From: Octopus bimaculoides
Lineage: Eukaryota
Direction of reading: 5' to 3'
Length of the DNA stretch: 64,000 nucleotides
NCBI RefSeq assembly: GCF_001194135.2
Contig: NC_068982.1
Span: 22,538,014-22,602,013 of the forward strand
Of this stretch, positions 6,751 to 55,408 are shown piece after piece. Under the pieces are notes generated by a model, which had not been told where the DNA came from, searched no databases, and saw only the letters and a program-made list of their open reading frames with translations. Each line of letters starts with the position of its first letter. Position 1 is the first letter of the stretch. A program made the position numbers and the translations under genes.

Positions 6751-8210
6751 TTATACAATTGCCCCTCAAAAAATTTTTAATTCCTTTGAAATTATGGTAT
6801 TGGAAATATTTGGATGTGAAAGAAATGTTTACATGATTTCAAATGCTTTTCAACTTTGCATATGTAATAAGAAGCACTTATATCTAACTAAAAATAGTTT
6901 CCATACAAAAATTCCTCTGTAAAATGTTTTATGCATAGCTTTATTGAACTTTTAAGTTCTTTTTAAGTTGCAGTTTCTAGTTTTCAGTACTAAATAGAGC
7001 AAAAAAAAAAAAAAAATTATATACCCAAGAAAAATTAATTTACACAAGTTTTATGGTCTTGAAGAAAAACACTTCACAATTGACATTGGAAAACCTTGTA
7101 ACAAAGTTTGTAGTACCAAATTGAGCCAAAACCCGAATTTAATTTCTGTTGGTTTATATTCAAATTTTCCTCATGAAATGTTGTTTCTGCTGGTACTGAC
7201 AGTAATCTTAATTACCCACTTTATTAATTATCTGCCATATTCACCACTTATATTTTAATTTAAATAGTGTTCATGTTTTGTTTGTTTGTTTTGTGTGTGT
7301 GTGATGATGCCATTGTTAAAACTTCAAAATGTTGCTTAAAATGTTTTTGCTAATGCCTGCATGGGAACTTCACTTTAAGCTCCAATGAGGATGTAATTTT
7401 CTGAGTCGTGTTCTCTGAAAACGTCCTTCTTATCAGTGTTAAAACTAAGACAAGCGATTTCATTAAGAGGTGAAAAATACTTCATTTCAGAACATTTCTC
7501 TGCTTAGCCTAAAAATCCTTTTCTTTACTATTCCAATACTAAGAAGTATTATTAGAAGAACTATCCTCGGTCCATACCACAGTATCTCATAACAATAGTT
7601 TTTTTTTTTTCAGGACATATTTATGGATATTTATGAATAATAATGTCATCAGTTGCAGGTTTCCAATGGTTCATTGTACATTTTCTTGTTGCTGCTCTTC
7701 TCCTTTGTCAGTCTACATTTACCAAACATAAGATATACACAGATGTACACATGGGATTCTACACATGATCTCTTGATCATATTTATTCCCGAGTTATTAG
7801 GTCAGTTGCTAGCTATTGGAGAAGACACTTCCTCAGAGATGCATTACATTTGGATTGGACATAAAACCACTTGCTTCTGAAGCGAACTACATAACCACTA
7901 GCTTGTGCTTTTTATCAGACTCATTTTCTCTCTTGAAATGGCTCTTTATTCTGAGAACTACCATACAGTGGATATCTTCTGCTGTGCTAATTGAAAACAC
8001 CATTCTGATTCAACTAATTGGATTTGAACAATTGTTTTGGATACAATTTAAGCTTTGTGTTATTCGTAGTGGCTGAAATCTGCCCTAATTCACATGTAAA
8101 GTGTGTGTGTGTGTATTTATATACATATGTATTTGTATTTATAGATATGCAAATATATATATATATATATATATGCACATACACACACAAAGTTTGTTCA
8201 TAAATATGTC

Positions 8211-8990: not shown

Positions 8991-11900
8991 TGTAGGAAGT
9001 TTTTGTTTCCACCTGTAAAGTGATATATCGGAAAGTTAATTTACGTTATTTGATCTTATTTATTAAAACGGTTTATAACAATTTCATTAAACTGTAACAG
9101 TTCGATATACATATACTTGGATTAATTAATTCTGTTTTGATGTGTATCTTAATTTATAAATCATGACTGTTATCAAAATTAGTGGGTCTTGAATCTCTTA
9201 AATTGCTTAATGTTATCAACCAGTTATTAAAATAGGCTTGATCTCAAAGTTTATTACAGTAAGTGGCTTAGACTGTTTTTCACCTGGTATCTTATATAAT
9301 AGTTTTTGGGTACCTGTTTACTAGACAAATCCCGTTTTCTATGATAGCATACTATATATATATATATNNNNNNNNNNNNNNNNNNNNNNNNNNNNNNNNN
9401 NNNNNNNNNNNNNNNNNNNNNNNNNNNNNNNNNNNNNNNNNNNNNNNNNNNNNNNNNNNNNNNNNNNNNNNNNNNNNNNNNNNNNNNNNNNNNNNNNNNN
9501 NNNNNNNNNNNNNNNNNNNNNNNNNNNNNNNNNNNNNNNNNNNNNNTCATTCTCACTCTTTACCAGATTGGTTTCAGTGAGTCACTTAGTTAATCCATTT
9601 GCATCTTATCCAATCATTCCGATTCGTATTTCATGTCATTAGAAATATTATTTATTTTCATTTTTCCTGTTGTATAATGTTCATGCATTAGCACTCTCTG
9701 ACCTACTTTTTACATAGAACTTGTCATGAAGATCTTTGCAGATGCATTATCGATGGTTGTAACTAAAGCATAATGAGGCCAGGAGATATCGACAATTTTT
9801 TCCTACTATTTCATAAGAACTCTGCCCATGAGTTACAAACTTGACTAGTGAATTAATGATTTGTCACTGGAGAGTTTAATTTTAAAGAAAGGCTCAAGTT
9901 ATAAAATTCTTTTCCATGGAGTAACTTTGTCACTCAAACTGTTACTCATACTTTTGCTAAATGTTGCTTCATTTATGGCATTTGCTGCCTGCCTTATGAA
10001 CCAAAATTCTCTTTGTCTTTGAAAGCTTAGCATTTGTACTGTAGGTTTATATTTATTCCATTTTCAACTTAATATTATCTTGGCTTTGTAATTTTGTTTA
10101 GACACTCTGATAACATCATTCAAGCTTAAGAAATTTTAATTAGATTTAAGTACTTGCTAGTTTTTTTATATTTTCTTTTCTTTCATATAATACACATAAG
10201 CCAGTTTTAATTACATTATCGAATACCACTTTTTGTTTTTATTAAAAATTGCTATCATTATTAACATAACTTTAAGAGAAAGATTTGCTCAATTTTTTAA
10301 TCTTGCAAATTACTATTGATTTCTAATGTAGACACGAGGCCACAAAGTGTGAAATTATTGGTATAGTCATTGTGATCAGAATCATTATTTGACTGGTACT
10401 TGATTTTATTAAATGAAAAGCAAAGTCCTTATCAATACCAATGTGATTTGAACTCATAATGTAAAGAGATGTAACTAAATATTGCAAAGTATTTTGTCTG
10501 GCATTCAATTCTGTCAATTTGTTTTGGAAATGGTAATAATAACATTGCAAACAAGAAAGTCAAGAAGATAGAAAATACACTAAATTAAATTTCGTTATCA
10601 CGACTGTGGATGCTTAGTAGCAAAAGGGTAAAATTTGTGTCGATCCTCATTACAGCATGAGGTTGAATCCCACCAAAGCTATCATACTAAATAATTCGAC
10701 ATGAAGACATGCAAGTCCTCCAAAACTCTACCTTCTTTGGAACAGTATTTTTAGAAGGGCACTTTCTAAGTCTTTTTGTGAGAGTTTGTTACTTAACTGC
10801 ATCCATTTTGAGAAGTCACCCATTTCTACAATCCATGACCTATTTCATCGTACAAGCTTCTCTTTCGCTTGAAAGCTTGCAGCATGTCTTTTCTATCTCA
10901 TTGAAGGATAAATTTTTCACCCACACAATACAATATACTTAAAATAAATAAATAAAATTCATGTAATTTTCCAATATTAAGGAATGGTAACTATTTGGAA
11001 CTGAATTTGTAAACGAGTGTAGGTATGTAAACAAAAGAATGAGTGTATAACATCTCATAGGCACATACATACAGCAATTAAAATATAAGAAGCTTGGATG
11101 CCACTGGATTAGGATTCAAAGAAGTTGAATTGTAAAATTGTTATGAATAGTCTTGTTCAAATTCGTTATCTAAAGAGTGGAAGGTCACACGCTGATAATG
11201 TACTGGCTACTTTCGATAGATCTTCATGTAAACCTTTCACATTGCAAACATTGTGTTCTGTGTCCTTGACCCCCTCCTTGTTTTATTGGCAGGGTGGGTA
11301 GATATTGCCATCTACAAGAATGTATTCCATGTACTGGAGACTCTTTCAGCTCCTCGTCGCTGAAGGGTAATGCATTGTGTTGTCTGTTGAGACTGTGAAG
11401 CATTTGCATGACCTCACATCAATGCATTTCTCAGATTTTATCTGTACTGTAAAAACAATTTATAACCTTCACATGTATTTATCATGTTTTGCATCATCTG
11501 AACAACATTTTGAATGTCAGAAAATGATCTTCGGTTTAAAATCCTGAAATAAAGTGTAAATCTTGAACTGACAGTGGAATTATTTTGATCTTTACAGACT
11601 ATGATTTATGGATTATAATAAGATGCTGCTAGTTTTAATCAGTTTAATACACCTTAAACAAATGTATTGGCTTGGAACTGGGAAATGTTGTTATTGATGC
11701 AATTGATTGGTTCATTCATTTGGATATGACAATATTGCTAATGATGCAAACTTAGATATTTAGAGGGATTTTACAAAGCAAATTATTAATTTGCTGTGTA
11801 AACTGAGTATGTTATATGGAACCTCAAGCAGATTGATGCAAAAGGGTTAAATATCTTTTTATTAATTTGAAATGATCATATAAAAATACAGTTTTTCATT

Positions 11901-26162: not shown

Positions 26163-28746
26163 TTAAATGGTGCTGGATGTCACTGGAAGTAGGTCGTTGT
26201 TGTATAACAGGAAGATAGTTGTATAGAAAATCATACCTTCATGAATATTCTGTGTGTTATTTTAAAAATTATTTTAAAATGCATCTACAAAAAACTGCAT
26301 TTAAATGATTATACTTTGTTCATGGGAAGTGTTGAATGAACTGTTTGTTTTTGTAAGATGAACAAAAATTGTTCTATCCTGAACTTTTTTATATCCTTGT
26401 TTCACCATCACCTATTATTCTGATGCTTCAAACATGATTTGTCTATTTTAGATTTATGGGGAATAACTACTTTTAGCATTGGTTTGAAAACTCTTGTTTA
26501 TAACTGGAATTAATCCTTAATCTGTACCTGTTGAACTTCTCTTCTGTTTTTCCTGTTGGGTTTGAGAGACATTGTTTGGCTGTTTGGCTCCCTATTTCAA
26601 GTTATTTGCATATGAACCGTCTAATCCACAATAGAAGAGAAAATAGCTGTTACACCCTTGTACTGATGTGTTCTGCCTGTATCTGTTATTAATTGAAGAC
26701 AATTTTCGGTCTGATTATTTCTTGGATAGAAATATGAAAATTTGGTTGTTTTGTTTTAAATTTTAGTTTTTATAGAAAATGCTATCTTAGAAAGAAAATA
26801 TCTTTGTGAATTCTTTCCATGAAGATGAATTATTGCTGTAATATGCCATTTTTTTTTATTGTATGTACATAACTGACTGTACTCCTAAAATGGGAAAAGC
26901 TATTCTTTACTTTCTCTATACAATAAATTAAAGCTTTGATGATGGAATATATTCATTGTTTTCAAAAACCAGTGAAATGTTTGCAGGAGTTTGTAAACAA
27001 AATGTTGCAAGTTGTATTAATCCTTGTTAATGCTTTTAAAGCTTATGCATGTATACAGCTGGAGAGAGAGAGAGAGAAACTATATCAGATTATAGATATT
27101 TCTCAGACACCAATTTGACATTGGTACTCTACTGTGTAATGTAAATTTAATGAGTTGTGTGTTACTGATATTTCTACATCCGATTCTACTCATCCATTCC
27201 ACCAAAAATATCACTAGGGCAATACACCTAGAATCTCAAACAAAATGAAGAGGGAAAAAATGCCTGGTAGATTAATATTCAAAACCATACTATCAGCAAT
27301 CAGCAAGTATATATAAAAAACAAAAAAAAAGTCTTTTAATTATCTGATGTTTTTAAAGTCAAAATATGTAGGATGCTGAATAATTCATCTACAGTTTTTT
27401 CTCTTTTTTAAATGTGTGGTGGGGAGGCTTTTAGAAGTAATGTTCTACATTCTGCCTTAACTTCCATCAAATAAATAATTACTTCTTGGTAATACATTTT
27501 TATCTCTTTTGTACTGTGTGCTAAGTTTCATAAAATTGTTTCCTTTACTTACTCTTTGTATTGCTGTTTGAAATTGGTTTGTGAATTTCTTTATTTTTAT
27601 TGGGTTAGTTTTAATCTTATTTCTTTTTGCATTTTATTTGTAAAATGGGCTTGAGAGCTGTGCTATAAAATTTGCTTCATAAAACATCACTTTAGCCATA
27701 CTCTTTCTGAACTGTTCCGCTAAAGTTCTTTGTAATGATGTGAACAGTACCAAACACGTGTGTAATATGACGGCTAAGCTGTGAATCCATATTTTTATCC
27801 TCATTTCTTTGTTATATTTAAGATATTTATGTTTTCATAAAAAAATAGTGGATAGAAATGTTAGCCATAAATCTTGAACTAAGTTAAATTTGAAGCGAGA
27901 ATTTTTCTTGGCTCCATGTGTTATTTTAGTTCTGAATCCTGTAGGATGACCACTTCAACACGAACAGGTGACAGATTTTAGTGCAAAAATCTGTCCATTG
28001 GCTGTCCCCGATTGCAAAAGTTTGAATTAGACATAAACATGAAATGGTAGATCCAGTGTAAGCAAAGTGCAAATTTAGCACTTTTTGTAATGAGTCTGAG
28101 GAATGAAAAAAAAGAAGATTCCTTGTTTGGTAAAATTAGAGATGCAAGGAACAACAATATGTACATTTACATATGAAGCAGTGAGGGTTGTTTTGATGTT
28201 TTAGGTTGGCATAAATATTTTTACTGCTAAATATATTTCCTTCTGTTAACCACTGAACTGTAAAATAGTTAAATCTCTTCTTTAACTAAGGAGTGCACAG
28301 TAGAAAGGGCAGCCATGGTTGGTCTATTGACCAGTAATTTAAATCCTCCAGTGCAGGTGTACACAATGCTTACACTGTGAAGACCTCATGTCCTTCTAGA
28401 CTTGAGGCAATTTTTTTTACATTACTGATGGTCTTAGAGGCTGTTTACTAATAAAGTGAGTCGAAATATGATCCTTGTATTCACACACTAACTGGAAGAA
28501 ACATTAAAGAAATGTATTATTGTAGTGTGCTATTACTGTATGTTGTTTAGTATTAAAGCATAATGCGATGATAAAGCCTGTATATTTCAATTTAGTGACA
28601 TTGGGAAGGATTATTCATTGAAACCTTTCAGAAATAGACCCCTTACTAAAAACAGATGTATTTTAGTTAGTCTTCAGTGTATTATGATCTAATATCTTTT
28701 GTATGAATTGTAATTAAATTTGTCAATTTTTAAATGTTTGTTTCAG

Positions 28747-28834
28747 AACACTTCCATATATTTGTTGGTGATTTAAGTCCAGATATTGAAACTCATCAAC
28801 TACGGGATGCCTTTAAAGCTTTTGGAGAAATATC
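28747..28834 (+). CDS. TIA1: TIA1 exon, RRM2 start with RNP2 ([30 protein letters not shown])
   Basis: tttcag|AACAC...ATATC|gtaagt; 88 nt, phase 1 in, phase 2 out. Confidence 0.96.
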
Positions 28835-31215
28835 GTAAGTATATGACTATTATGTGGTTATGGTTCTCGTCACAAGATGTTGCTTAACCATGTAAGCTCA
28901 AAGTTTGTAGTTGCTTGTCTTAAAAATCAAAAAGCAGAGCAGTATTGGTTATTTGAATCTTGGTTGGATGCAGTTGATTTTACTCCCCTATTAAAGGTAT
29001 TATAGATTCTGAAGATAGCTTGAAGCTTTGGCTTAAAACTGAGCACATACATTAGCTTAACGTAGACTTCAGTCTGACACAATGCAAAAGTTGGATTATA
29101 ATTTGAAATCACAAAAATCTATACATACATGCACACACACACACATACACCAGTATGCAGCTGCATGTATGTAAATGCAATCACTTAATGCGTACTGCAA
29201 GACATTGAAGAACTTGAGAAATATAGAGACACAATTATCTTCCTTGCTTATGAGATAAGTCTACATAATTCTTTGTGTAAAATATATTTTACACTTGTTG
29301 AGGTCAGACCATGAACATTTGAACATGCATTGGATATTATGATATAATCAATTTCTTTCTCCCTCAATGTACATGTTGCATGTAATTTTTTTTTTTTTAG
29401 GTTGGTGAGCGCTTAAAATTTCATTTTTATTTTGGAAGAAAAAAAAAATGTATGTAATTAGATAGAATCTTACCATTTTATGAACTTTGGTGTAAACAAA
29501 ACCATTTAGGTCCTTTTTTTGTACTGTAGTAATTGTAATATCAGCTTATATGTCATCCTAGAAAATAGATATACTATGTGTAATTCCCATATGATAAAAT
29601 GAATATTTTTTGACTAGAAGGAATACATTCCTAATAATTTTTTATTTTGGCCAACTGTTGAAGTATTTCATGACTTTAGTGTGTATCGGCTGTAGACTGC
29701 AGAGGACTGTCACTCGGGAAGTAAATTATTTTACCAATATACATATAATACAATCATAATGAATGAATGCTCTTCGTCTGTTTAGGCAACAGTTTGACGT
29801 TTTACTTGACAAATCTTTGCATTCTTTTAGATTACCCAGCTGATAACATCTTGGCTTTCAGTAAGCAGCTCAGATGACAGCATTGCAAAATGCCTTGTTT
29901 CTAGTTCTGCTTTCTGGATCATGGACCTTATCCAAATGATTTTCAGTAATATATTATCAATTCACTCAAATATTTCAGTGAAAAAAATGACTTTCTAGAC
30001 ATGTTGATTTACTTGGAAAGGTTTTCTGGTGTTCAAGAATTAGAATTCTCTTATCAGTGTCTACTATATAGTTTAATTGTTCTACGGGACAACCTCATTA
30101 TCTTCTTTTATTGGATGAATTTCCATTTAACTCTTCTATTGAATATTTTTTGCCTTGAGTTTTAGTAATTTTCTATGGTATTTTGTTGATATTGTGAGGT
30201 AAAGAATAGAAGCAATGTAAAATTTTAGAAATCAAGAAAGTTTATTATAGTTTAAACAATGTGATTGTTCACTTCCAATCCTTCTTACTCTACCTTCCAT
30301 ACAACGTATGCGAAAGAACTACCTAAAACACGTTGAGGTTTATAAATTTTGCCCCAATTCTTTACATTGAGACCATCCAGTCTGATTTCAAACCCACACT
30401 ATTCTCCAATATTCATTTTCCCCCCACCTTTCAAGTTTGTGTGTATGTGTAACTTCTAATTTTCATGATCACAACATGGGAAGATTGTTTTTGGTTTACA
30501 CTTTTCAGCTCAGTGATTTTAAAAATAGGAAACTTGTGTTGCTAAATTAACAGAGCTTTTTCGCCTTCTCTCTCTGTCTAAATCAGTTTGCAATAAAGCT
30601 ACTTGAGTCTAATTTGCATTAAAATAGCATGCAGTAAGTCATTGTTGAAGCCACGTTCACTATTATGTTTGCTGTTACTGTTGTTTCAGATGAGGTTGCA
30701 ATTAAAATTATACAGAAGGTATATATTATTAAACTGGCCATAGTCATTGAACTGCTCCCATGCAGGAGTACAGCCTTCGAGGGTTTAGTTGATTATATTA
30801 ACCCTTACCTCCCAGTATGTTTCAGTCTGTCGCTAATAGGTTTCAATTTGGCAAACCATAAGACTAGGATGTATAAAGTGACACAATTCACATACTTTCT
30901 TTTACACACACATGCACACACTGGCCTTTTACCGTTACCATCTACTGAATTCCACTCACAGACTATTGGTTAACCTGAGACGAAGACACTTGCACGCCTA
31001 AGGTGATTGCATAGTTGGGATTGAACCGAGAACTATGTAATTTCAGAAGTGAGCTTCTTAATTACACTACCACATCTGTACTTATAAAATGGCTTATGTG
31101 CATTATTTACCATTTTTAAAAATCAATTCTGTTTCACTTCCCCCACTCCATGCCTTTTTTTTTTATCTTCCATTTAGTTTACTAGTTTATTATTATATAC
31201 GTTTGTGTGTGTGTG

Positions 31216-31290
<75 letters not shown>

Positions 31291-34200
31291 GCGTGTGCAC
31301 ACGCTCACACACACACTCACACATGTATATGCATATACTTGCATATGTATATATGCACACACATGCACATGTGTGTAGAATATAAAATGTAATAAGGTGT
31401 CATTGACATAACTTGCGTGTTAGTGTTTGTTTGGCTGTATGGCAGAGTTTAGCTTGTGTGCTACTAAAATGTACGCTTTGTGACTGGCTCTGTGTGTCTC
31501 GTTATATTGTTATATTCAGGATGTACATAGCAGAGGTGCTATTTAGTAAATGAATTTAATTCTCTTCAATCGTTGTTATTAAACATGTCTCTGTCAGTTT
31601 TGTATGCAATAATGGTGGTAGAATGATCAGGTTGTCCTGTCAATGCTGAATTGAAATTTTGGCTCCATATTAACATTGAAAAGATTTTGTATGTGTATCC
31701 AAGAAGTTTACCTGTGTTGTCTTGTTGATCTTCCAAAAGTATTGATTATATCCCAAAACAAAAAAAGCAAAAAAAAAAATTTGAAAATGCAATATACTAA
31801 CAAATTAGGCTGAGAGTGACTTACTTTTTGCTTTATTTATTTTTTTTCCAATTTATTTCTTCTATATTTATTTAGATGCTTTTTAAATTTTTAGCTTTCA
31901 TTTGTTTTCCCTGTTTTTTTAATATTTTTTTTGAGACCTAGAGGGCAATTTTATTTGAAGAATAAATGAGGATATCGTATTTGGAGGAAATTTCCACCAA
32001 AATTTGGAGGAAATTTATCTTTTACAACTATCACATGCAATTATACTACATATATATATTTCATTGCGTTGATCTTTGTATATATATGTAAGTTTGTGAT
32101 TTTGTATTTTATTCTATTTTTTTTAAAATTTTCTGTTAAGTCCAACAAATTTACCTTTAAAACTTTGGTTAATGTATATATATTTTGTATGTATACATAA
32201 ACATGAAAAATTATATTAAAAATTAAATTCCTTGCTAAACTGGCGCCTCGGGGAAATATCCCAGAGCTCCATTGAACATGAAGAAAGGAATAAAAGGATT
32301 TTTTCTGTTGCCATTGCTCATTTTTCTTTTCCAATTCTTCAATTCCAAACATTGTTGCTGGTGCCATATTTAGTAATTGTTACTTTTCCTAACTTCAAAC
32401 AGATGACACGACCCGTCGTCCAGTGTACTACTACTACTACCAACAAATAAAGCGCAATTTGGCACAGGCTATGTATGCCTTTTCATTCCTACTTTTTTTT
32501 TCTTTTTTCCTTTCTCATTTCTTTTTTTCTCTTTTTTCCTGTAAAAACCGCTGTGTGAGTAGTGTGTGCACTTCTGCTATGTCACAGCGTTGAGTGCAAG
32601 ATAGATTGCTTGTTGGGCAGCAGCAGCAGCAAAAATGTGTGTCAGTAATCCTTGCCCTGTCTGTTCACCCAATCTTACATTTATATTATTTGCTAGTAAA
32701 CAAAACTATATATATATATGTATATATATATATGGGGACCTTTTATTTTATTTATGGCTGATATTTTCATACTTTTTGTAAAGATGTATATGTATGGTGG
32801 TGTTTGTGTGAGTGTGTGGTTATCACACATTTTTCCAACCTTCCCTGCAAGTAGTCAATACCTTCCCCTATTTTATATATAATTTTTTCTAGGAGCACAT
32901 TCTTCCCCCTTTTTTAATATTTGCATAAATTTAAGTATTTATGTACATACGTTCTACATACACACCATGGTAAATTTACTGTATATTTTTAAATTCATTT
33001 CATTTCCCCCCTCTATCTTTTTTGCATTTGTGTTGTATTTTTAATTCTCTTTCTTCCCATTTTATTTCTTTTAGTATGTATCAAAATAAATTTATTAACC
33101 GCTTTTTGCAGTGCACCAGATTAGACACTTAAAACTTTTTTCAAGCTCTCTTATTGTTTTTTGTAGCCAGAAGCAAGGAAACAATGTATCCATGGCCCAT
33201 TTGGCTATGTTGTTTCTTTGAAGCATGTCTCTGGCATTGATGGATGCTGCTGGTTATTATTAATCACTCTGATCATTACCCTCCCTCTTTGTAGGTTTTC
33301 AGTGGGTTTTAGTGGGAATGGTGAGAAGCAGGCATGCTAGTTCACATTATTTGGTAGCAATTGTATCTTCAGCTTTCTTAGAATGCACTAGAAAGGCTTC
33401 AACAGCAAAAGATCAACAATAATGCATATTCATTCGTACATAGATATTACTTAGCGTACATGTTACTGTGTATGCTCACTCACACATTCTATATACATTC
33501 AAACGCATCTACCAGTTTCCACTGAGTTTCATACTATAACTAGCTGTATTTTTTTTTTCTTATTTGTAGTAATGGATCAAGTTATATTAATACCATCTTT
33601 CATTTTGTTGACTTTTGTATTTTCTCCATTTTCTGTTTCAATCCTCTCAATTTGCTTAGTCTGTTATTGTGCCCTCCGTATTTCATTTTTCTTGTAGTTG
33701 TTTCTATTGGTTTTCATAAATATGTATATTATATTAGGCTTCTGACTGGGGCTTTTAAAGTGCGTCTGAAAATTTAATCCCTCTTTGGCGGAATTATCTA
33801 CTTGTAAAGGTATCTTTATTTTGAAAGTTGAGGTTCTTGACTGTCTGCACATACTAATTTGTATATTGGATGATCACTTCTGGTTTTATCGTCATTCAAA
33901 TTTTAGGTATACAATTTTGTTAGGACTAATTTAAATTGTTCTAATTTCTATAGAATTTGAGATTATTAAAGGCTTTATTAGGGCTTCCCCTGTTGTAGTA
34001 CCATGTTGAAATTGTTGGAAATTATGTAACAGTTTTGATTTCCTCATTTTTAGTGTTATATATATAATTCATGTATGTAAAAATGGAGAATAAAATGAAT
34101 ATTGTTGTTTGGACTCTTTCAATTGAAATTTTTCTTGTATATCTTGCAGCTTTCCTTTGTATTCATCATTTCTCAGCAAACCAACCATGTTTTAATTTAT

Positions 34201-37200
34201 ATCTCCTTAAATCCTTCTTTTGTCTTGGTTTACATTCCTTATATCATCATGGTTTTATAATAGCTGTATTTCTGTGAAATATTCATTTTTGACTTCATGA
34301 TTTCATAACCAAACTCTTTTTTCATATTATTTTTCATTCAATAATTTCTATCCACAAACATCCTTGTATTTTAAAATCTTTTTATTCACTAACATTTACT
34401 TTCCTATCCCAAGTTAGCAGTTTTTGCTAAGTAGGTCATTATATAAAAGATTGTGATTAAATTTCTACAAAATATCCTATGGTTTTTAATTCTGTAAACC
34501 TGGTTTATTAGATTCCATAAATTGCCTTCTGCTTGCCTCCAAGTTTACCTGATACCCTTTACGTTGACAATTTTATCCCAACCAACTGCATCCAATTATT
34601 CTTTCAGTATTATCTCCAATCAAGGAAAGCTAATTGCTTACCTTATTACTTGACAATTGTAAAAATACTTTAATAAACTCATTGTGTTGAATGAGTAACG
34701 GTTGTTTTAATTTAAAAAAGAAACCTAATGATTATTGAATCATTAGCTAAATCTCTAATCACTTGCTGCATCAGTCTATATATATATATATCTATATATA
34801 TATATATTTATTTATATATTTATATATGAAAACCCTGCCTAAATTTGGTAGCAGTACTATGTACATGTTTGCATAAAAACTTGTTGCTGTTAAAGCTTTT
34901 CTTCCAGCTAACCCATGCAGACAGTCCAGATTTGATCTCTATATTAAAAAGTTTTGTTTGTTAATCAATAATACTACTAACACCAATGCAGTATTAGGTG
35001 TAACAACATTGCTTTGTTATTAACTACTGAAACTTTTTAGTCTTTATGATCTGCACCAAAGTCTTTGAGTGTATCAAAAAATCTAAGTTTAGTGGAACTT
35101 AAGTAAGTGGAAAATGCCAGTCACATACACCTCAAAACTAATTTCTTTAACATAGTGGGCTATATTTTCTGCATGTAAAGAATTTTTCTTCATTCTTTTC
35201 CTGATTTTGAAGTCTTTAGAATATTAGTTAAAAACATCAGTAAAAAAACATTTGGTTAAATTAGATACATTCATTAGCTTTTAGTTTAAAAGTACATGTT
35301 GTAATGTACTTTTCATCTTTTAACTATCTATTCATTTAAAGTATAATTTTTCACAAAAATTTTCTTAGAAATTATTTTACGACTAAGCTACAGGTTCTAT
35401 GAAGCTGACTAAAACTATAATATCTGGAAGTAAATCCCATGAAGAAGTCTACATTTATAATATTTGGGAGGGAATCATCAGTGCATTTGTATTGATGTCA
35501 CTAAAATTTTTATTGGTTGCTTGTTAAACTTGTAGCTTTTTGCCACAGTTGCTTTGGTCTTTTTATACAGCCTGCTTGCCGTCATGTGTTTCAGGCTTAC
35601 TGTCTTTATAGTTCTCACTCAATTTTCTGTTTTTTGCTTTCCCCAATTTATTGCAGAGATTGTAAAATCATTCGGGATCCGCAAACCCTGAAATCAAAGG
35701 GATATGGTTTTGTTTCTTTTGTTAACAAAGTGGTAAGTAATAGTTTTTTTTTCATATTTATAATGATGTAAAAAATATGCTTGGGGTTTCTCAGAGGTGT
35801 TTGACAATTAAACAGTAATCTGAACGCAAATAATTATGGCATTCACCTCATTAATGGTATTCATACTGCTTCTTTGATCTTTTTTCTTTTTCTTTTTCTT
35901 TTTGTATTAAAAGCGGGTGTTAATGAAAATATGTATACAGTTCGGTCTAATTTCCAAAACTAATGACTACACCAAATGTTAATGTGCTGAAGGGGTTCAA
36001 TATGTTCTCTTGTATGTAACAATAAAATGAAACATTTTTTGGAAAGCAATGTGAAGTTCAGTGTATTGTTCAACTTTTGGATTATACATGTTAAGAAGCT
36101 CCTATTGAACCAGATTGTTGCCATGACTGATTGTATATTAGTCACCATTCTAAAATGTCACAACTATGCACAATCCATATGAAAATTGTTCTTTTCTTTA
36201 AAGCAAAAGAAAAAGCATTTAGTATATGTCTGACCTCAGAATTCTCTCTCTCTCAGTATCAATGCATTTGAATACTCTACATGACTGAATTGGGACTAGA
36301 ATTCTAAATCTGGGCCGCTTTTCTACTGCGGCTTATTTAGATGGAACATCTCAGCAGTTTGGAAAAACCTGCTTGGGTTGTTGGTTGCAACACACAACAT
36401 TTTCAGTGATGTTAAAACAGTTGCCTGCTCCATACTGAATAATGGATTTCTGTATTGCCATATCAAATAAGATATTGCTGACTGAAATACAATGATAGCT
36501 TTTCATAGAACCTTTTGGAAACGTTGAATATTTTTCAACTCAATGCTAAGTACTTAGTATCAAATGTTCAATTAAAATTTGATTATGGCTCAACCAGCTT
36601 TTGAAAGATATGCAATAATTCAAATCTAATCTTAATTATGACTTATTGAATGTTCCACGAGACAACATTTCCAGGACATGTTTTGCAAAAATGGGATATT
36701 CAAGAATGAGTAAGAAGCAACTGTGCTGGCACCATGCAAAGCACCCAGCAGACACTCTGTAAAGTGGTTGACGTTAGTGTTAAAGGGCATCGAACTGCAG
36801 AAAGCATGCTGAAACTGGCAACTAGAGCCTGGTGCAGCCCTCCTGCTAGCCAACTCCTGGTCATATCATCCACCCTAAGCCAGCATGGAAAACAGGTTTT
36901 AAACAATGATGATGAGGAGGAGTGTGATATTAAATCTAAAAGCTCGTAACTCCACACTGATAGCGGATACGATAGCAGGTAGCATGTAAATTGTGCAAGA
37001 TATAGGGCAAGTCCCAAAATTACTATTTCTTTAGCTCGAGATCAATCCTGATGAAGCAAAAGTAGATGTGTCATTCTATTCGTGACCGTCCTATCTTTAG
37101 GTGTATCTAGGAATTCATAATCTGTCATATTTTGTTTTAAATAATGGTATGTGTAATTTGATAGAACTCCAGCTGCTGTTTCTAGCAGGTTGTGCAGTGA

Positions 37201-43200: not shown

Positions 43201-46200
43201 TCTAGCAATTGATGATTATATATAGGATGTAAAATAAAGAAGAAATGCATCGATTTCCTTTCTCTTTTCAGCAACAGCAACCTTTCTCCTCCCCTTCAGC
43301 CTATGGTCAGTTTTATGGTAACATGGGTTATTGGGGCTATCCATATCAAAATATGGCCCAGAGCAGCTATGTTCAAGGAGGAATGAATCAATGGGCAGGT
43401 TATAACTACCAAGCATATGCTGGGTAAGTGAACTTTTTACAGTTTTTGTCTTGTTACTCAATTTAAACATTTTCAATAAGTCTCAAACTACATTGATTAT
43501 CTCCAAATGTTTGTGCATGATGTTTCATTGTTACAAACAACAAAACTGCCTCTGCATTATTAATCAATCTGCTAGAAGTAGCAGCCAAATTAACCTGGAG
43601 CCACATCCATTTTGCAAGCACAGTATACTCTAGGCTACAAAACGGACCTAGTGGGTAATACAGGCAAATGGGGTGACTAATCATCATCATTGTAATGATC
43701 ACTTTTCCATACTTGCATGGGTCAGACGGAATAAGAAAGGTATTTTTCCTTTAGTCCAAACTTCCTTGGAAGATGTGAAATAAAGTGCTCATTTTACAAC
43801 TGTTGCCTGTTTTAAATTTAGCATTACTACTATCAAGACTGGGAGATACAAGCACACATGTGTAACTCCTGTGCATAGGGCTTCTTTCAGTTTCATCTCT
43901 CAAATCTACTCAAGGCTCTGCACAGCCAGTGCTATAGGAGATACCTGAGGTACCTTGTGGTTGTGCAGCAGACGGCTTGAACCACTGATAGCATAAATGT
44001 TTGCTGGTAACCAATGTATATGATTTCCATCATAGTGGTTACATCGTAAGAACATAAGTAAAACTTCCAAAACATTCTTGGCAACATCTAGCCTGTTTAT
44101 TATTTTGGCTACAAAAATCTTTATCTGCTTTGGGTGGAGTTCTTCGTACCCTCCCACTCTGTTGCTCTCTCTTACACACATACACAATCTGGTAAATGAA
44201 CTATGAAAGTGTAAAGAAGACTGCTGGATTGCAGCTTTCGTGTATTTAAAAACAACTGACATGGGATCCTACGATTAAGATAGTAACTAAACCAATATTT
44301 TCTTTTTCTTTACAGGATGAATGTCCCTGCGATGCAACAATGGGGCCAAATTCCCCTGCAGCCTGGCCAGCAACAGCAGCAATTTAATGGTCAGCAGCAA
44401 ACTATGCTTGGTTATCCTCTGCAGCAGGGTAGGTATTCTCATACATTACCTGCATATTTATCTTCATAACCCCCTTCCATTAAAGACTATTTTTCTTTAA
44501 AAGGGTGCATCATTTTTGGGGGAGAGGTGGCAGGGTTTCTTTATANNNNNNNNNNNNNNNNNNNNNNNNNNNNNNNNNNNNNNNNNNNNNNNNNNNNNNN
44601 NNNNNNNNNNNNNNNNNNNNNNNNNNNNNNNNNNNNNNNNNNNNNNNNNNNNNNNNNNNNNNNNNNNNNNNNNNNNNNNNNNNNNNNNNNNNNNNNNNNN
44701 TGGTTAATGGTTTCGTTGGTTGTCCTTTTTTTTTCTAAAGAATGTTCTTTCTTTTAATTATTGTTTTTATTTTCTTTTCTCATCATTTGGAAGAAGGAAA
44801 AAATTAATACCCTGAATTTGCTAGGCATTTTGTTCTGTTTAATTTTTTTTTTTTATTAATATTTGGAAAATAATGTTTTGTTTTATATTTTCTTAAATCT
44901 GTTACTTTTTTTTTTTTTCCCCCTCCTTTCCTACTAACTTCCGTAATTCACTTGACTTGGTTTTCTAGCAGACAATTTACCCTTCAGCTTTTCTTTCAAA
45001 GTTTGTGGATACAAGTCTTTTCCTCTGCATGCATAATGAATTTTCTCTTTCATTCCTCCCTTCATTTTCCTTCATTTATTTACTACACCCATATATTTAC
45101 CTTCCCCATTTCCCGTATTTGTTATTTTCAATTAAGCAACACATTAAATCTAGTTTAGTTTGACTCCTACCGCCTTAAATTAATATGTGGGGAACAGAAA
45201 CACTTCAGAGTTCCATATAATCTATAAACTCCTGTAAATTTTAGTTGATTATGTTATGGAAAAAAGAAAATCTTCTGTCAGTTTTGACAATAAGAATTCC
45301 AGTTGTTAGATCAACTGAACTTATCTACTCCTTTGTGTAAGTGGTTGAGAGTTCCACAGACACTTGTAACTCTTAATGTAATCTTCAGGCAAAATCAGTG
45401 TGGGGCCACGCTGAGCCACTGAATTAAAATCAAAAGTTCATCTAATGTGGTTGTCTTTGATGGTTTGTCAACCCAAGACTAGTCTTACCACTTGTCCAAG
45501 ATGCCATGCATTGACGTCAAACTCAGGGTTTTGTGATTGCAATGCAAACTTCTTTTTAACTATATGGCCATATAGGATGGGATGCAGACACAGTTGAGGG
45601 GCTAAGAGGGGCTAGGTTTAATGTACACACAAACACATATACTCACATGCACATGTACGTGCACACAAATTCAAAACACTTGTAGCCATCATTACCAAGT
45701 TTTACGGGAGAGAAAAAAGCGGGGCTATTTATTTTTTTTGAAAGCTAAAAGTTGGAATCGGTTTTTATTTTTCTATATACTACTACATATTGTCAATGTA
45801 ACAGCTTTGCATGTTTCAACTATTCTATCTGGGATTCACCCAAAGTGTAATTGCTTCATTTTTTTTTCTCTTCACATTACAATTTACTAAATTAACTATA
45901 CATACATACATATATATATAACAAGATTAAATGTTTTTTACCTCTATTTTCTCTTACTATTGCATGTAAATTTATATAAATCAGTAAGAATCTCATTTTC
46001 TTTCTCAATGAGCAGTTGGATTAGCCTAATATCTAAACATAGTCGGGCAGTTGGTAGTCTACTGGAATTAAAAATGGCAACTATATAATGCCACCAAGTC
46101 AATTACAGTGCTCACGGCTGGCATTTTAGAATGTTATCTCTTTCTCAACCCCATTCCATTTTAACTGATAACACTAACCTCTTTCTTTTTTTTTATTTCC

Positions 46201-47877: not shown

Positions 47878-50145
47878 AAAAATCGTAAAGCAAGATTATA
47901 GAATGTTTTATGTCTGGAATTTAGTTCAGAGATGGAAACCAAAAAACATTGAGGAAAGTTTTGCATGTTTTATCTTTTCATGTAATAGAATATTGAAAAT
48001 GAAAGGAAAAGCCAGTTGTTCCTGTGATGTCTTTTCAAATTAATGCAGGCATAAGATTTAATTATATTCCCCTCTGAGTCTTTTCATCAGAGAGCTATAA
48101 CAGTTTTACGTGCAATTCATGATATTGAGTTATTCGTTGTGGTTTTTTGGTACTGATCAGCTAGCATCAGTCTTAAAAATTAGATTTCTTTTGCCATGAT
48201 GTTCTACTTCCCAGGCCCCAGTTGATTTTTTTGACCCATCACTGTCATTTTTGTGGCATGATTTCAACAATGTCTAGTTGAAATGTTGTTCAATTTTTCC
48301 AGATAGCTACTTGGAAGAGGACAATTAGGTTCTGGTGGTCACAGTAAGCATTTCCAGATTTGATTTTGTCTTTTTTAACAACATTAACATTTTCAGAACT
48401 TGATTTCTTAGATGGAGTTTTTAAAAAAAAATTTTGATATTCTTTATTATTATTTCTTTGCTACAAAGTTCTTTTGGATTGCAATTTGTTGATAAATAGA
48501 TATTTTGTTGAATTTTGATAAAACCTCTCTACTCACTCCGGAAATTGATTTGAGTCGGTGTTTGGCTTGGCATTCTTTAATAGTTACTAACACAACTTTA
48601 GTTTATTTTGTTTCACTTTCAAAGATTTATCTCAATATTTCCCAATATAGAATATGGTGGTGGGGTGGGAGAATCATGCAATTTTTATGTTTAAAAAAAA
48701 AAAAACTTAATAAAATACTAAGCTAGGTTTTTTTTTTTTTTTATAGAAGTTTGTATTCCCTTGTTGCTTTTTGCTCACAAGTTTCTGTAGTGTGTTCTTT
48801 AGCTCTTTCACTTGGTAGTACATACCGTGTGAAATATTTTTTTTATATATTAAAATATGGATGAGAAGCATGGTTGGTTTCTAAAGGTTTTGCTTTTGTT
48901 TATATACATACATACATATATATATGTAAAATTTTTTTTCTTTGCATATTTCTAATAAACTGGCTGCTTTACTACATCATAAATCAGTAAGCATGTTAGG
49001 TTTGAATATCTAAATAAAAGGAGTCANNNNNNNNNNNNNNNNNNNNNNNNNNNNNNNNNNNNNNNNNNNNNNNNNNNNNNNNNNNNNNNNNNNNNNNNNN
49101 NNNNNNNNNNNNNNNNNNNNNNNNNNNNNNNNNNNNNNNNNNNNNNNNNNNNNNNNNNNNNNNNNNNNNNNNNNNNNNNNNNNNNNNNNNNNNNNNNNNN
49201 NNNNNNNNNNNNNNNNNNNNNNNNNNNNNNNNNNNNNNNNNNNNNNNNNNNNNNNNNNNNNNNNNNNNNNNNNNNNNNNNNNNNNNNNNNNNNNNNNNNN
49301 NNNNNNNNNNNNNNNNNNNNNNNNNNNNNNNNNNNNNNNNNNNNNNNNNNNNNNNNNNNNNNNNNNNNNNNNNNNNNNNNNNNNNNNNNNNNNNNNNNNN
49401 NNNNNNNNNNNNNNNNNNNNNNNNNNNNNNNNNNNNNNNNNNNNNNNNNNNNNNNNNNNNNNNNNNNNNNNNNNNNNNNNNNNNNNNNNNNNNNNNNNNN
49501 NNNNNNNNNNNNNNNNNNNNNNNNNNNNNNNNNNNNNNNNNNNNNNNNNNNNNNNNNNNNNNNNNNNNNNNNNNNNNNNNNNNNNNNNNNNNNNNNNNNN
49601 NNNNNNNNNNNNNNNNNNNNNNNNNNNNNNNNNNNNNNNNNNNNNNNNNNNNNNNNNNNNNNNNNNNNNNNNNNNNNNNNNNNNNNNNNNNNNNNNNNNN
49701 NNNNNNNNNNNNNNNNNNNNNNNNNNNNNNNNNNNNNNNNNNNNNNNNNNNNNNNNNNNNNNNNNNNNNNNNNNNNNNNNNNNNNNNNNNNNNNNNNNNN
49801 NNNNNNNNNNNNNNNNNNNNNNNNNNNNNNNNNNNNNNNNNNNNNNNNNNNNNNNNNNNNNNNNNNNNNNNNNNNNNNNNNNNNNNNNNNNNNNNNNNNN
49901 NNNNNNNNNNNNNNNNNNNNNNNNNNNNNNNNNNNNNNNNNNNNNNNNNNNNNNNNNNNNNNNNNNNNNNNNNNNNNNNNNNNNNNNNNNNNNNNNNNNN
50001 NNNTATAACTTATGTTAATTATTTTTTCTTTATGCATGCAGTTACATGTGCTAGGAGTGACCTTTAATTTTTCATTTATTGTGTTCTTTTCTCAACTCTG
50101 GTTTCTTTCTGGTATTTTTCAGGCTACCCACAAGCTCCGTACTAA
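28747..50145 (+). CDS. TIA1: TIA-1/TIAR-family RNA-binding protein (nucleolysin), 5'-partial spliced gene: RRM2 + RRM3 + Q/Y/G-rich C-terminal domain, 9 coding exons in window
   Basis: Exons 28747-28834, 35657-35732, 40499-40604, 40990-41082, 41198-41282, 42654-42792, 43272-43423, 44316-44428 and 50123-50145 all have AG/GT boundaries and matching phases. They join into [14 protein letters not shown]...[10 protein letters not shown]...[19 protein letters not shown]...NCTVYCGG...DKGYAFIRF...VKCSWGKES...Q/Y/G-rich tail, which are hallmark TIA1/TIAL1 motifs. RRM1 exons were not found in the window. Confidence 0.96.
30905..31080 (-). mobile_element. Decayed CORE-type SINE
   Basis: ccatctactgaattccactcacagactattgg...gaagacacttgc...gggattgaaccgagaactatg; reverse complement of the 8211 family. 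Confidence 0.65.
31200..31330. repeat. Compound (GT)n(AT)n(AC)n microsatellite
   Basis: Directly visible; explains the YI/HT low-complexity ORFs here. Confidence 0.95.
32403..32472 (+). other. TIA1: Candidate PTC-containing (poison) alternative exon of TIA1
   Basis: ttacttttcctaacttcaaacag|ATGACACG...GGCTAT|gtatgc followed by a pyrimidine/U tract at about 32480-32540. Splicing after the phase-2 exon gives TC+A then TGA (32404-32406). The length of 70 nt also shifts the frame. Confidence 0.55.
35657..35732 (+). CDS. TIA1: TIA1 exon, RRM2 RNP1 ([25 protein letters not shown])
   Basis: ttgcag|AGATTG...AAAGTG|gtaagt; 76 nt, phase 2 in, phase 0 out. Confidence 0.96.
36720..36925 (+). mobile_element. 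Decayed (GAT)n-tailed SINE 3' part
   Basis: aaagcacccagcagacactctgtaaagtggttgacgttag...ccagcatggaaaacaggttttaaacaatgatgatg. Confidence 0.65.
37770..37998 (-). mobile_element. CORE-type SINE
   Basis: gggcttctttcagttttcatctaccaaatcgactcag...ttgcccaaggtgccatgcagtgagactgatcccagaaccatgtg. Confidence 0.75.
38485..38670 (-). mobile_element. Decayed (GAT)n-tailed SINE 3' part
   Basis: cattatcattttgtcatccttttccatgttagc...gccaaccacttttcagtggactggatgctttttct. Confidence 0.55.
38760..39720 (-). pseudogene. Decayed RTE-like LINE reverse-transcriptase fragment
   Basis: Minus-strand remnants in the correct order: IF.TR.I.EK, LNN...[22 protein letters not shown] (YADD motif region, about 39196-39215), KKTKIM, KYLG (39015-39025); multiple stops and frameshifts. 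Confidence 0.7.
40499..40604 (+). CDS. TIA1: TIA1 exon, RRM2 end ([35 protein letters not shown])
   Basis: atatag|GATGCT...AGACA|gtaagt; 106 nt, phase 0 in, phase 1 out. Confidence 0.96.
40990..41082 (+). CDS. TIA1: TIA1 exon, linker and RRM3 start ([31 protein letters not shown])
   Basis: tttaag|ATACAA...TTACAG|gtaaat; 93 nt, phase 1 in and out. Confidence 0.95.
41198..41282 (+). CDS. TIA1: TIA1 exon, RRM3 ([29 protein letters not shown])
   Basis: tttcag|AGGAGC...ATTCG|gtaagt; 85 nt, phase 1 in, phase 2 out. Confidence 0.95.
41430..41555 (+). mobile_element. Decayed (GAT)n-family SINE fragment
   Basis: gaaaaagcacccattacactctgtaaagtggttggt...ggtatccagctgtagaaa. Confidence 0.55.
42654..42792 (+). 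CDS. TIA1: TIA1 exon, RRM3 end ([46 protein letters not shown])
   Basis: taaaag|ATTTTC...AATGAG|gtgtgt; 139 nt, phase 2 in, phase 0 out. Confidence 0.93.
43272..43423 (+). CDS. TIA1: TIA1 exon, prion-like domain ([51 protein letters not shown])
   Basis: tttcag|CAACAG...GCTGG|gtaagt; 152 nt; Q/Y/G/N-rich composition typical of the TIA-1 C-terminus. Confidence 0.9.
44316..44428 (+). CDS. TIA1: TIA1 exon, prion-like domain ([37 protein letters not shown])
   Basis: ttacag|GATGAA...CAGCAGG|gtaggt; 113 nt; continues the frame from the phase-2 donor at 43424. Confidence 0.9.
46336..46430 (+). repeat. Genomic poly(A) tract (A56) followed by an A-rich extension
   Basis: Uninterrupted A from 46336 to 46391, then A-runs punctuated by single T's. 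Confidence 0.95.
49027..50002. other. Assembly gap in the last TIA1 intron; other gaps at 9368-9546, 24107-24116, 44546-44700, 54236-54767 and 55295-55304
   Basis: Runs of N. Confidence 1.
50123..50145 (+). CDS. TIA1: Probable terminal TIA1 coding exon (GYPQAPY-stop)
   Basis: Strong acceptor ggtatttttcag|GCTACCCACAAGCTCCGTACTAA; phase 1 matches the 44429 donor and the peptide fits the domain composition. Two N-gaps in the preceding intron could hide other exons. Confidence 0.7.
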
Positions 50146-54157: not shown

Positions 54158-55408
54158 ATATATATATATATATATTTGTATGTGTGTATGATTGGAGATA
54201 TTTTATTGGCCATTTTTCTGTTGGTTGCTTTGATTNNNNNNNNNNNNNNNNNNNNNNNNNNNNNNNNNNNNNNNNNNNNNNNNNNNNNNNNNNNNNNNNN
54301 NNNNNNNNNNNNNNNNNNNNNNNNNNNNNNNNNNNNNNNNNNNNNNNNNNNNNNNNNNNNNNNNNNNNNNNNNNNNNNNNNNNNNNNNNNNNNNNNNNNN
54401 NNNNNNNNNNNNNNNNNNNNNNNNNNNNNNNNNNNNNNNNNNNNNNNNNNNNNNNNNNNNNNNNNNNNNNNNNNNNNNNNNNNNNNNNNNNNNNNNNNNN
54501 NNNNNNNNNNNNNNNNNNNNNNNNNNNNNNNNNNNNNNNNNNNNNNNNNNNNNNNNNNNNNNNNNNNNNNNNNNNNNNNNNNNNNNNNNNNNNNNNNNNN
54601 NNNNNNNNNNNNNNNNNNNNNNNNNNNNNNNNNNNNNNNNNNNNNNNNNNNNNNNNNNNNNNNNNNNNNNNNNNNNNNNNNNNNNNNNNNNNNNNNNNNN
54701 NNNNNNNNNNNNNNNNNNNNNNNNNNNNNNNNNNNNNNNNNNNNNNNNNNNNNNNNNNNNNNNNNNNTATATATATATATATATATATATATATTACACG
54801 TGTGTGTGTATGTTATGTGTAATTGTGTGTGTAGATGAGCATTTCTTTTATTGAATGAGCGCTTGGTTACACTAGAGGTGTACAGAGTTGTTTTATGCGG
54901 TATCTAGGGCTACAGCGAAAAGCCATGCCTAAGGTGTCGTGCAACCAGCCTTGTTTTACTGACTGAGTTAGCCAATGGGTAATTGCTTGTATTCCTATCT
55001 TCTGCATGCGCGAATACGTATGTTTGTGGGTATATATGTGTGTGTGTATATATATATATGTATGTATATATATAATATGTATATGTGTATATTATTATGA
55101 ATGATCTTTCATTGCTATCTCTGAAGAACAGTTAGAAAGTTATAACCCTTTTTGAGAGAGAGAGTATGTGTGTGTGTAGCATTTCGTGGGATTAAAAGAT
55201 ATTCAGAAAAAAAAAAGTCCCCTCCCCTCCAGAAAGACTGGCCACTTTGATGCCTACTGTTGGTTGGCTAAAAAAAAAAAAAAAAAAAAAAAAANNNNNN
55301 NNNNAAAAAAAAAAAAACAAAAAAAAAACAACAAAAAAACAACAAAAAACATACAAACTGAGCACGTGAGGTTTGTTTCCTCACTCATAAAAAGAAAGAA
55401 AAAAATAT

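Follow-up and report, generated by a model that had tools for sequence, protein, structure and literature searches.

We analyzed a 64,000-nt stretch of the Octopus bimaculoides genome (assembly GCF_001194135.2, contig NC_068982.1, positions 22,538,014 to 22,602,013 of the forward strand), hereafter the window, in which an initial annotation made from the letters alone had proposed an autoregulatory poison exon of TIA-1. Most of an Octopus TIA1/TIAR gene was found on the + strand of the window. Its exons were mapped with tblastn, and the conceptual product of 285 aa was 100% identical to XP_036367567.1 of O. sinensis over 285 aa. Two constitutive exons, located by tblastn and inspection of the sequence, frame the region of interest. 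Exon A (28745-28834, + strand) encodes the first half of RRM2 and ends in phase 2, with ..GGA GAA ATA TC at 28834 and the donor ATC|GTAAGT. Exon B (35657-35732, + strand) opens with A|GAT TGT, corresponding to DCKIIRD, and its first base at 35657 is the acceptor partner of the main junction from 28834. The intron between exons A and B is 6.8 kb long and splits RRM2. Inside this intron lies a 70-nt cassette exon (32403-32472, + strand), supported by sequence, read depth and junction reads, which is a conserved poison exon of octopus TIA1 and probably serves a negative feedback loop that responds to TIA1 itself.

The cassette exon and its transcripts

The signals that define the exon were correct to the base in the initial annotation. 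The acceptor reads ttacttttcctaacttcaaacag (longer form ttacttttcctaacttcaaacAG), with its AG at 32401-32402, and the exon begins ATGACACG. The first full codon after TC|A is an in-frame TGA (32404-32406, + strand), and inclusion of the 70 nt shifts the frame by +1. This stop lies 66 nt 5' of the exon junction at 32472, that is, farther than the 50-55 nt before a junction that define the positional criterion for nonsense-mediated decay (NMD), and at least seven more junctions follow downstream. The donor, TAT|GTATGC at 32473, agrees with CAG|GTAAGT at 5/9 positions and is among the poorest matches of the gene, as measured by consensus counting; most of the constitutive donors of octopus TIA1 are seen in the sequence to be GTAAGT. 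Starting at donor +7, a U/C tract extends over 63 nt (32479-32541, + strand; 44 T, 15 C, 3 A and 1 G), which is 70% U and 94% pyrimidine, in line with the initial annotation. It holds the sole 60-nt window of at least 95% pyrimidine on the + strand of the 64 kb, and it is the proposed binding platform for TIA1. The initial annotation had also pointed to four CpGs in an otherwise CpG-depleted intron. Their number was confirmed, with an observed/expected ratio of 1.17 in the exon vs 0.31 for the 6.8-kb intron, and a density of at least 4 CpGs per 70 nt was reached, within the intron, by this exon only.

The use of the exon was evaluated with raw reads of three RNA-seq runs from 2026 (X38, X39 and X40), which come from the same organism and were found by a deep-intron query. 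The predicted junction 32472^35657 was read directly by 17, 16 and 11 reads in X38, X39 and X40, respectively (44 in total), and, among reads aligned to 31379-32477, the read ends at 32472 ran on as AGATTGTAAAATCATTCGGGATCCGCAAAC (AGATTGTAAAATC..), which is the start of exon B. At the other edge of the exon, the depth rose from 2, 0 and 0 at 32394-32401 to 38, 11 and 13 at 32402-32409, and 43, 11 and 14 reads (68 in total) carried a non-fitting part at 32403. The plateau depth was about 48, 21 and 20 in the poison exon vs about 490, 335 and 350 in exon A. By this depth ratio, the exon was included in about 10, 6 and 6% of TIA1 mRNA at steady state. The read ends at 28834 agreed with exon B at only 0.88, 0.93 and 0.94. 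This shortfall tracks the inclusion estimates, which is what would be seen if the other reads passed into ATGACACG. The edge in coverage, combined with the mixture of read ends at 28834, leads us to the strong inference that 28834 is joined to 32403.

It was observed that the depth of the upstream intron (31379-32401) was only 0-3 in these runs, compared with 2-12x in the downstream intron (32830-33530). This suggested that the downstream intron, which carries the weak donor, is removed more slowly than the upstream one. No base differences were seen in the poison exon reads of X38-X40, giving no sign of editing, and a truncated octopus open reading frame (ORF) ending ..GEIS was not found in the protein collection.

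Conservation in molluscs and vertebrates

The orthologous locus of Argonauta hians was aligned with the octopus intron, the alignment covering the 3' two thirds of the latter. The identity was 95.4% over 32274-32548, comparable with 94.7% for the coding exons and set against a background of 50-57% in the intron. In the upstream intronic flank, which includes the polypyrimidine tract and the acceptor AG (32274-32402, + strand), 127 of the 129 columns (98.4%) were identical. The Argonauta exon is 73 nt long, differing by one substitution and one extra TAC, and again causes a +1 frameshift. The AG, the TGA and GTATGC were all kept, as was the U/C tract, in which small indels occurred in T runs only; the conservation of AG, GT and U-tract that had been proposed as a check in related cephalopods was therefore observed in Argonauta. 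Among sampled 31-mers, 17/17 at the poison exon region were kept by a related organism, vs a fraction of 0.19 in the deep intron. These results showed that the poison exon and its flanks are under strong constraint within octopods.

A much deeper match was found at the donor. Octopus positions 32464-32491 (+ strand) agreed with positions 7822-7849 of the bird TIA1 locus L005 at 25/28 bases; intron and strand are the same in both. The shared sequence is ACAGGC(T/G)A(T/C)|GTATGCCTTTT(C/A)ATTCCTA (octopus/bird). In the octopus, this conserved core runs over the exon/intron boundary as ACAGGCTAT|GTATGCCTTTTCATTCCTA and contains GTATGC (32473-32478) and UUUUCAUUCC (32480-32489). The local score was 22, and none of 1000 dinucleotide shuffles reached it (mean 10.7, sd 1.2, max 18). 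The reciprocal test and the test against Argonauta likewise gave 0/300 shuffles at the observed score. As the exon is present in TIA1 mRNA, is conserved in Argonauta and has a donor region conserved in vertebrates, it is more than a product of chance.

The matching block of the bird forms the 3' end of another candidate exon (7764-7830; 67 nt, +1), here called '6B', which has a good acceptor and reads S-CPQPKKGVTN-TGA. Exons 6A and '6B' occupy one intron, '6B' being about 190 nt further 3'. When metagenome contigs were scanned for the pattern, six hits were obtained, of which four were vertebrate-like TIA1/TIAL1 loci (L006, L007, L008 and L010) that represent three further vertebrate intron sequences. 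All four have the block in this same intron, at the end of an exon that shows AG, an in-frame TGA and GTATGCC; the exon of L006 reads S-CPNSKMMVEN-stop. In an alignment of Octopus, Argonauta and four vertebrate loci, ACAGGC.A.GTATGCCTTTT.ATTCCT was invariant, and a weaker similarity, CCAA.AAATAAAG, was seen further into the exon. Among the vertebrates, the donor region GTATGCCTTTTAATTCC was invariant in the bird and the four metagenome loci. In addition, the ORF of an assembled TIAL1-type transcript (P0263) ends ..FGKIS-CPNSKMVVKN-stop. This one assembled transcript ORF, together with the splice signals, suggested that '6B' is spliced in vertebrates and predates the duplication of TIA1 and TIAL1. 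Our literature search found no paper that names a second poison exon of vertebrate TIA1/TIAL1.

Human exon 6A has been described as 66 nt long; its inclusion appends 11 residues before a stop, so that the product has 144 aa (PMC4286123). Since 144 aa equals 133 + 11 aa, exon 6A follows ..FGRIS and occupies the same intron as the octopus exon. In the bird locus, exon 6A (VSLKNGQNS..) spans 7506-7570/7573 and has a weak donor, GTTGTA or GTAGTT, followed by a 63-nt U/C tract (to 7640). The initial annotation had described both this layout and the position of exon 6A, and the two statements held: the layout was seen in the bird, and the position, after ..FG(R/E)IS and before D(A/C)(R/K), follows from the human report and the bird locus. 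The octopus exon and exon 6A have in common the intron, a similar length (about 66 nt for exon 6A), a premature termination codon (PTC), and a weak donor with a U/C tract of about 60 nt behind it. They differ in sequence. Exon 6A encodes 11 residues before its stop (VSLKNGQNCPG) and shows no similarity to the octopus exon; the alignment score of the two was within that of shuffles (95/500 reach it), and only low-complexity tracts aligned. The 6A peptides of the paralogs read VSLKNGQNCPG-stop in TIA1 (P0262, P0282 and P0266) vs IAHKNGQDLEG-stop in TIAL1 (P0253 and P0260). Both exon 6A and '6B' are common to the two paralogs, so both predate the TIA1/TIAL1 duplication.

The comparison with '6B' gave a different result. 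The octopus exon and '6B' agree in intron, phase, strand, +1 frameshift and in-frame TGA, and U runs follow in each case. They share the final 9 bases of the exon, GTATGC and the beginning of the intron, and the lengths are similar (70 nt vs 67 nt in the bird). The stop is placed differently, being codon 11 in the vertebrate '6B' (S-CP..N, then the stop) and codon 1 in the octopus. On sequence grounds, the best reading is that the octopus exon is the counterpart of vertebrate '6B' and not of 6A. The initial annotation had suggested a conserved or convergent feedback loop at the orthologous position. Of these two terms, conserved fits better than convergent, but the counterpart it named, exon 6A, has to be replaced by '6B'.

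Other molluscs were compared in the same intron. In two oysters (L002 37920-37951 and L003 53705-53735), a frame-shifting candidate of 31-32 nt was found at the edge of a conserved island, with the form cag|G..(31-32 nt)..CCAGAT|GTATG(C/G)C followed by U10-11. In a profile search, the orthologous oyster site was the top match in both species, but with E values of 0.088 and 3.4. In Lottia (L004 7079-7143), a 65-nt frame-shifting candidate has a good acceptor and the donor CTT|GTAAGA, and is located 15 nt before the sole U-rich cluster of the intron. Searching the octopus intron against the oyster or limpet introns by blastn gave nothing significant, and our literature search yielded no report of a TIA1 poison exon in cephalopods or for bilaterians at large. 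The oyster and Lottia candidates are leads only.

Common descent is the best reading of the vertebrate match, because the two exons share intron, strand and frameshift and because the 25/28 match spans the donor. The points that count against it are as follows. A clear alignment with vertebrates is confined to the final 9 bases of the exon and the first 19 of the intron, and neither the 5' half of the octopus exon nor the acceptor region has a vertebrate alignment. Among the molluscs, the 13-mer ATGTATGCCTTTT that the oysters share with the octopus was not significant by shuffling, and the best local alignment between octopus and Lottia, which falls on L004 7079-7143, did not have a significant score. 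With these points included, we lean, by somewhat more than an even chance, towards the view that the octopus exon and vertebrate '6B' descend from one poison exon of the bilaterian ancestor, and that the donor and TIA site ACAGGCNAY|GUAUGCCUUUUMAUUCCU have been kept near-unchanged for more than half a billion years through self-regulation. The switch would then probably predate the split of molluscs and vertebrates.

Flanking intron and wider locus

Downstream of the U/C tract, the intronic flank (32542-32700, + strand) was 85% identical to Argonauta. It includes GTGAGT at 32555-32560, a consensus-like donor that is located 83 nt past the weak donor, beyond the U/C tract, and is kept in Argonauta; judging by its sequence, it may compete with the weak donor or serve as a decoy. 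In X38, about 6 of about 27 reads continued past 32472. Upstream of the exon, the conserved purine-rich box AUGAAGAAAGGAAUAAAAGGA (32278-32298) was predicted in both the minimum-free-energy and the centroid folds to pair with positions 32496-32523 of the U/C tract. Such pairing would loop out the poison exon and mask the tract. The fold of 32262-32560 gave z = -0.59, indicating no significant structure.

Further downstream, a second conserved intronic block of about 530 nt (block 2; 32830-33360, + strand) reached up to 98% identity to Argonauta. It contains conserved GCATG motifs at 33223 and 33332 and an AATAAA at about 33085. The possibilities that block 2 is a further exon or a site of intronic polyadenylation were both rejected, the depth there being 2-12 and even, with no edges, pile-up or spliced ends. 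No Rfam family and no credible ORF were found in block 2 or the conserved region, and block 2 is presumed to be regulatory intron. Upstream of the exon, 31195-31395 gave many sub-threshold Rfam microRNA hits on both strands. These fell on TG/CA/TA low-complexity repeats and were judged to be noise.

The exons that flank the intron are themselves highly conserved. With synonymous sites included, the nucleotide identity to Argonauta was 100% for exon A and 98.7% for exon B, and the other coding exons showed 91-96%. Neither the exons for RRM1 nor the RSKLGLG mini-exon of isoform X1 could be located within the window. In Argonauta, the exon preceding exon A sits about 24 kb upstream of it. The window contains four assembly gaps (N runs), at 9368-9546, 44546-44700, 49027-50003 and 54236-54767.

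Proposed feedback and its alternatives

Crosslinks of TIA proteins fall just 3' of the exons whose inclusion they promote, and these proteins reportedly recruit U1 snRNP (PMC2964331). The tandem RRM2-RRM3 (RRM23) of TIA-1 binds UUUUUACUCC with nM affinity, the U-rich part being at the 5' end (PMC5416816). The invariant UUUU(C/A)AUUCC at donor +8 to +17 agrees with this ligand at 8/10 positions, and motifs like the ligand occur twice on the + strand of the window, one of the two being this site. By sequence, then, UUUU(C/A)AUUCC resembles the best known ligand of TIA-1 RRM23. On this basis, a feedback loop can be proposed. Octopus TIA1 would bind UUUUCAUUCC and the U runs that follow, 8 nt past the poor site UAU|GUAUGC, and the bound protein would help U1 snRNP to use this weak 5' splice site. 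Inclusion would place a UGA directly after ..GEIS, so that the product would consist of RRM1 and half of RRM2. More TIA1 would give more inclusion and more unproductive mRNA, through NMD and/or a truncated protein, and consequently less TIA1. Self-regulation by TIA1 and decay by NMD in the octopus are both inferred.

Several known systems resemble this scheme. TIA proteins are said, in the title of Le Guiner's 2001 report, to activate exons with weak donors and U-rich stretches on their own pre-mRNAs, and the inclusion of exon 6A is reportedly raised by TIA-1/TIAR in that work. The octopus exon shows the features of the Le Guiner type, namely an intron that splits RRM2 (after ..FGxIS and before D(A/C)(R/K)(V/I)(V/I)(K/R)D), a weak 5' site and a U-rich stretch downstream. 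In the mouse, inclusion of a Tia1 cassette exon leads to NMD, and the NMD isoform increased on Tia1 overexpression and Upf1 knock-down (Jangi et al. 2014, PMC3967051). As described in the passages of that paper on Tia1, the mouse exon is a PTC cassette with well-conserved flanking introns and follows the same feedback logic as proposed for the octopus; the same passages leave open whether it corresponds to 6A or '6B'. In humans, the ultraconserved intronic element uc.313 lies in intron 5/6 of TIAL1, where a single RefSeq transcript has an exon that it overlaps in part (PMC7340126). This TIA-family intron probably corresponds to the octopus one, and an overlap of uc.313 with '6B' is a lead only. 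Outside the TIA family, ultraconserved poison exons of SR and hnRNP genes exert homeostatic control through a conserved PTC exon with conserved flanks, according to the part of PMC3973340 that cites Lareau 2007 and Ni 2007. The octopus element differs from these exons in that part of it can be aligned between a mollusc and vertebrates. To our knowledge, the conservation of SR/hnRNP poison exons has been described within vertebrates only.

A few observations weigh against the feedback reading. The junction between exon A and 32403 is deduced from the coverage edge and the mixed ends. The Logan contigs of X1, X9 and X10 were colinear with the genome and ran unspliced through both splice sites; these were judged uninformative, as minor isoforms are lost from such contigs and the type of run had only been guessed. 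The two further points, which concern the composition of the U/C tract and the level of inclusion, bear directly on the alternatives.

The exon could be a conserved poison exon that is set mainly by other factors binding pyrimidines or the flanks, such as PTB, ELAV/Hu, hnRNP C or Rbfox, which would amount to cross-regulation. The U/C tract is mixed, with UCUU and CUUUC motifs, and would also suit PTB, ELAV/Hu or hnRNP C. Conservation of the flanking intron exceeds 1 kb, far beyond the need of one TIA1 site, and block 2 carries GCATG motifs; in the mouse, moreover, Rbfox2 modulates the Tia1 NMD exon, as stated in the passages of PMC3967051 on that exon. Against this, the most deeply conserved piece is donor +1 to +19, where TIA proteins act (PMC2964331), this piece resembles the optimal RRM23 ligand, and autoregulation has been shown for mouse Tia1, again in the passages of PMC3967051 on this gene. 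We therefore regard control mainly by other factors as unlikely, with roughly one chance in a handful, and note that TIA1 self-regulation and cross-regulation are not exclusive of each other.

The level of inclusion raises the question of what the spliced product does. A steady-state share of 6-10% without an NMD block may reflect weak decay, or a transcript that is there for its truncated protein. The main output could accordingly be a functional truncated protein of about 128-135 aa (RRM1 and part of RRM2), acting like sTIA-1 as a modulator of full-length TIA1, and the human sTIA-1 protein made from exon 6A has been detected and is active (PMC4286123). The constraint in the octopus, by contrast, falls on splice sites and intron flanks and specifies no peptide. 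The stop is codon 1 in the octopus vs after 10 unrelated-looking residues in vertebrates, and it is placed 66 nt before a junction, upstream of at least seven more. We give the truncated protein little credence as the main output. That the exon is splicing noise, a cryptic exon in an element with another role (an enhancer, a non-coding RNA or intronic polyadenylation at the AATAAA near 33085), would suit the conservation well beyond the exon, the colinear contigs of some runs and the AATAAA in block 2, but is very improbable given that Argonauta and vertebrates retain the AG, GT, stop and frameshift exactly, that inclusion was reproducible in three runs, and that there was no Rfam family, no ORF, no structure beyond z = -0.59 and no coverage edge or pile-up at block 2.

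Feedback through poison exons is a main way in which RNA-binding proteins steady their own levels. The poison exons of SR proteins are thought to have arisen repeatedly. The class of exon reported here is already known; what appears to be new is a poison exon element that is partly alignable between a mollusc and vertebrates. If the reading of common descent is true, this would rank in animals with the most ancient non-coding regulatory elements known to be conserved in sequence, and no older alignable element of autoregulatory splicing would be known. For vertebrate TIA1/TIAL1, the results also point to the presence of another poison exon in addition to the published exon 6A. As an invertebrate poison exon is used and constrained, and can in part be aligned base by base to vertebrate TIA1/TIAL1, the persistence of a self-regulatory splice switch since the bilaterian ancestor becomes testable. 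The same holds for the minimal RNA element that TIA proteins need at a weak 5' splice site, and for the function of the conserved intronic element of vertebrate TIA1/TIAL1, which is possibly uc.313.

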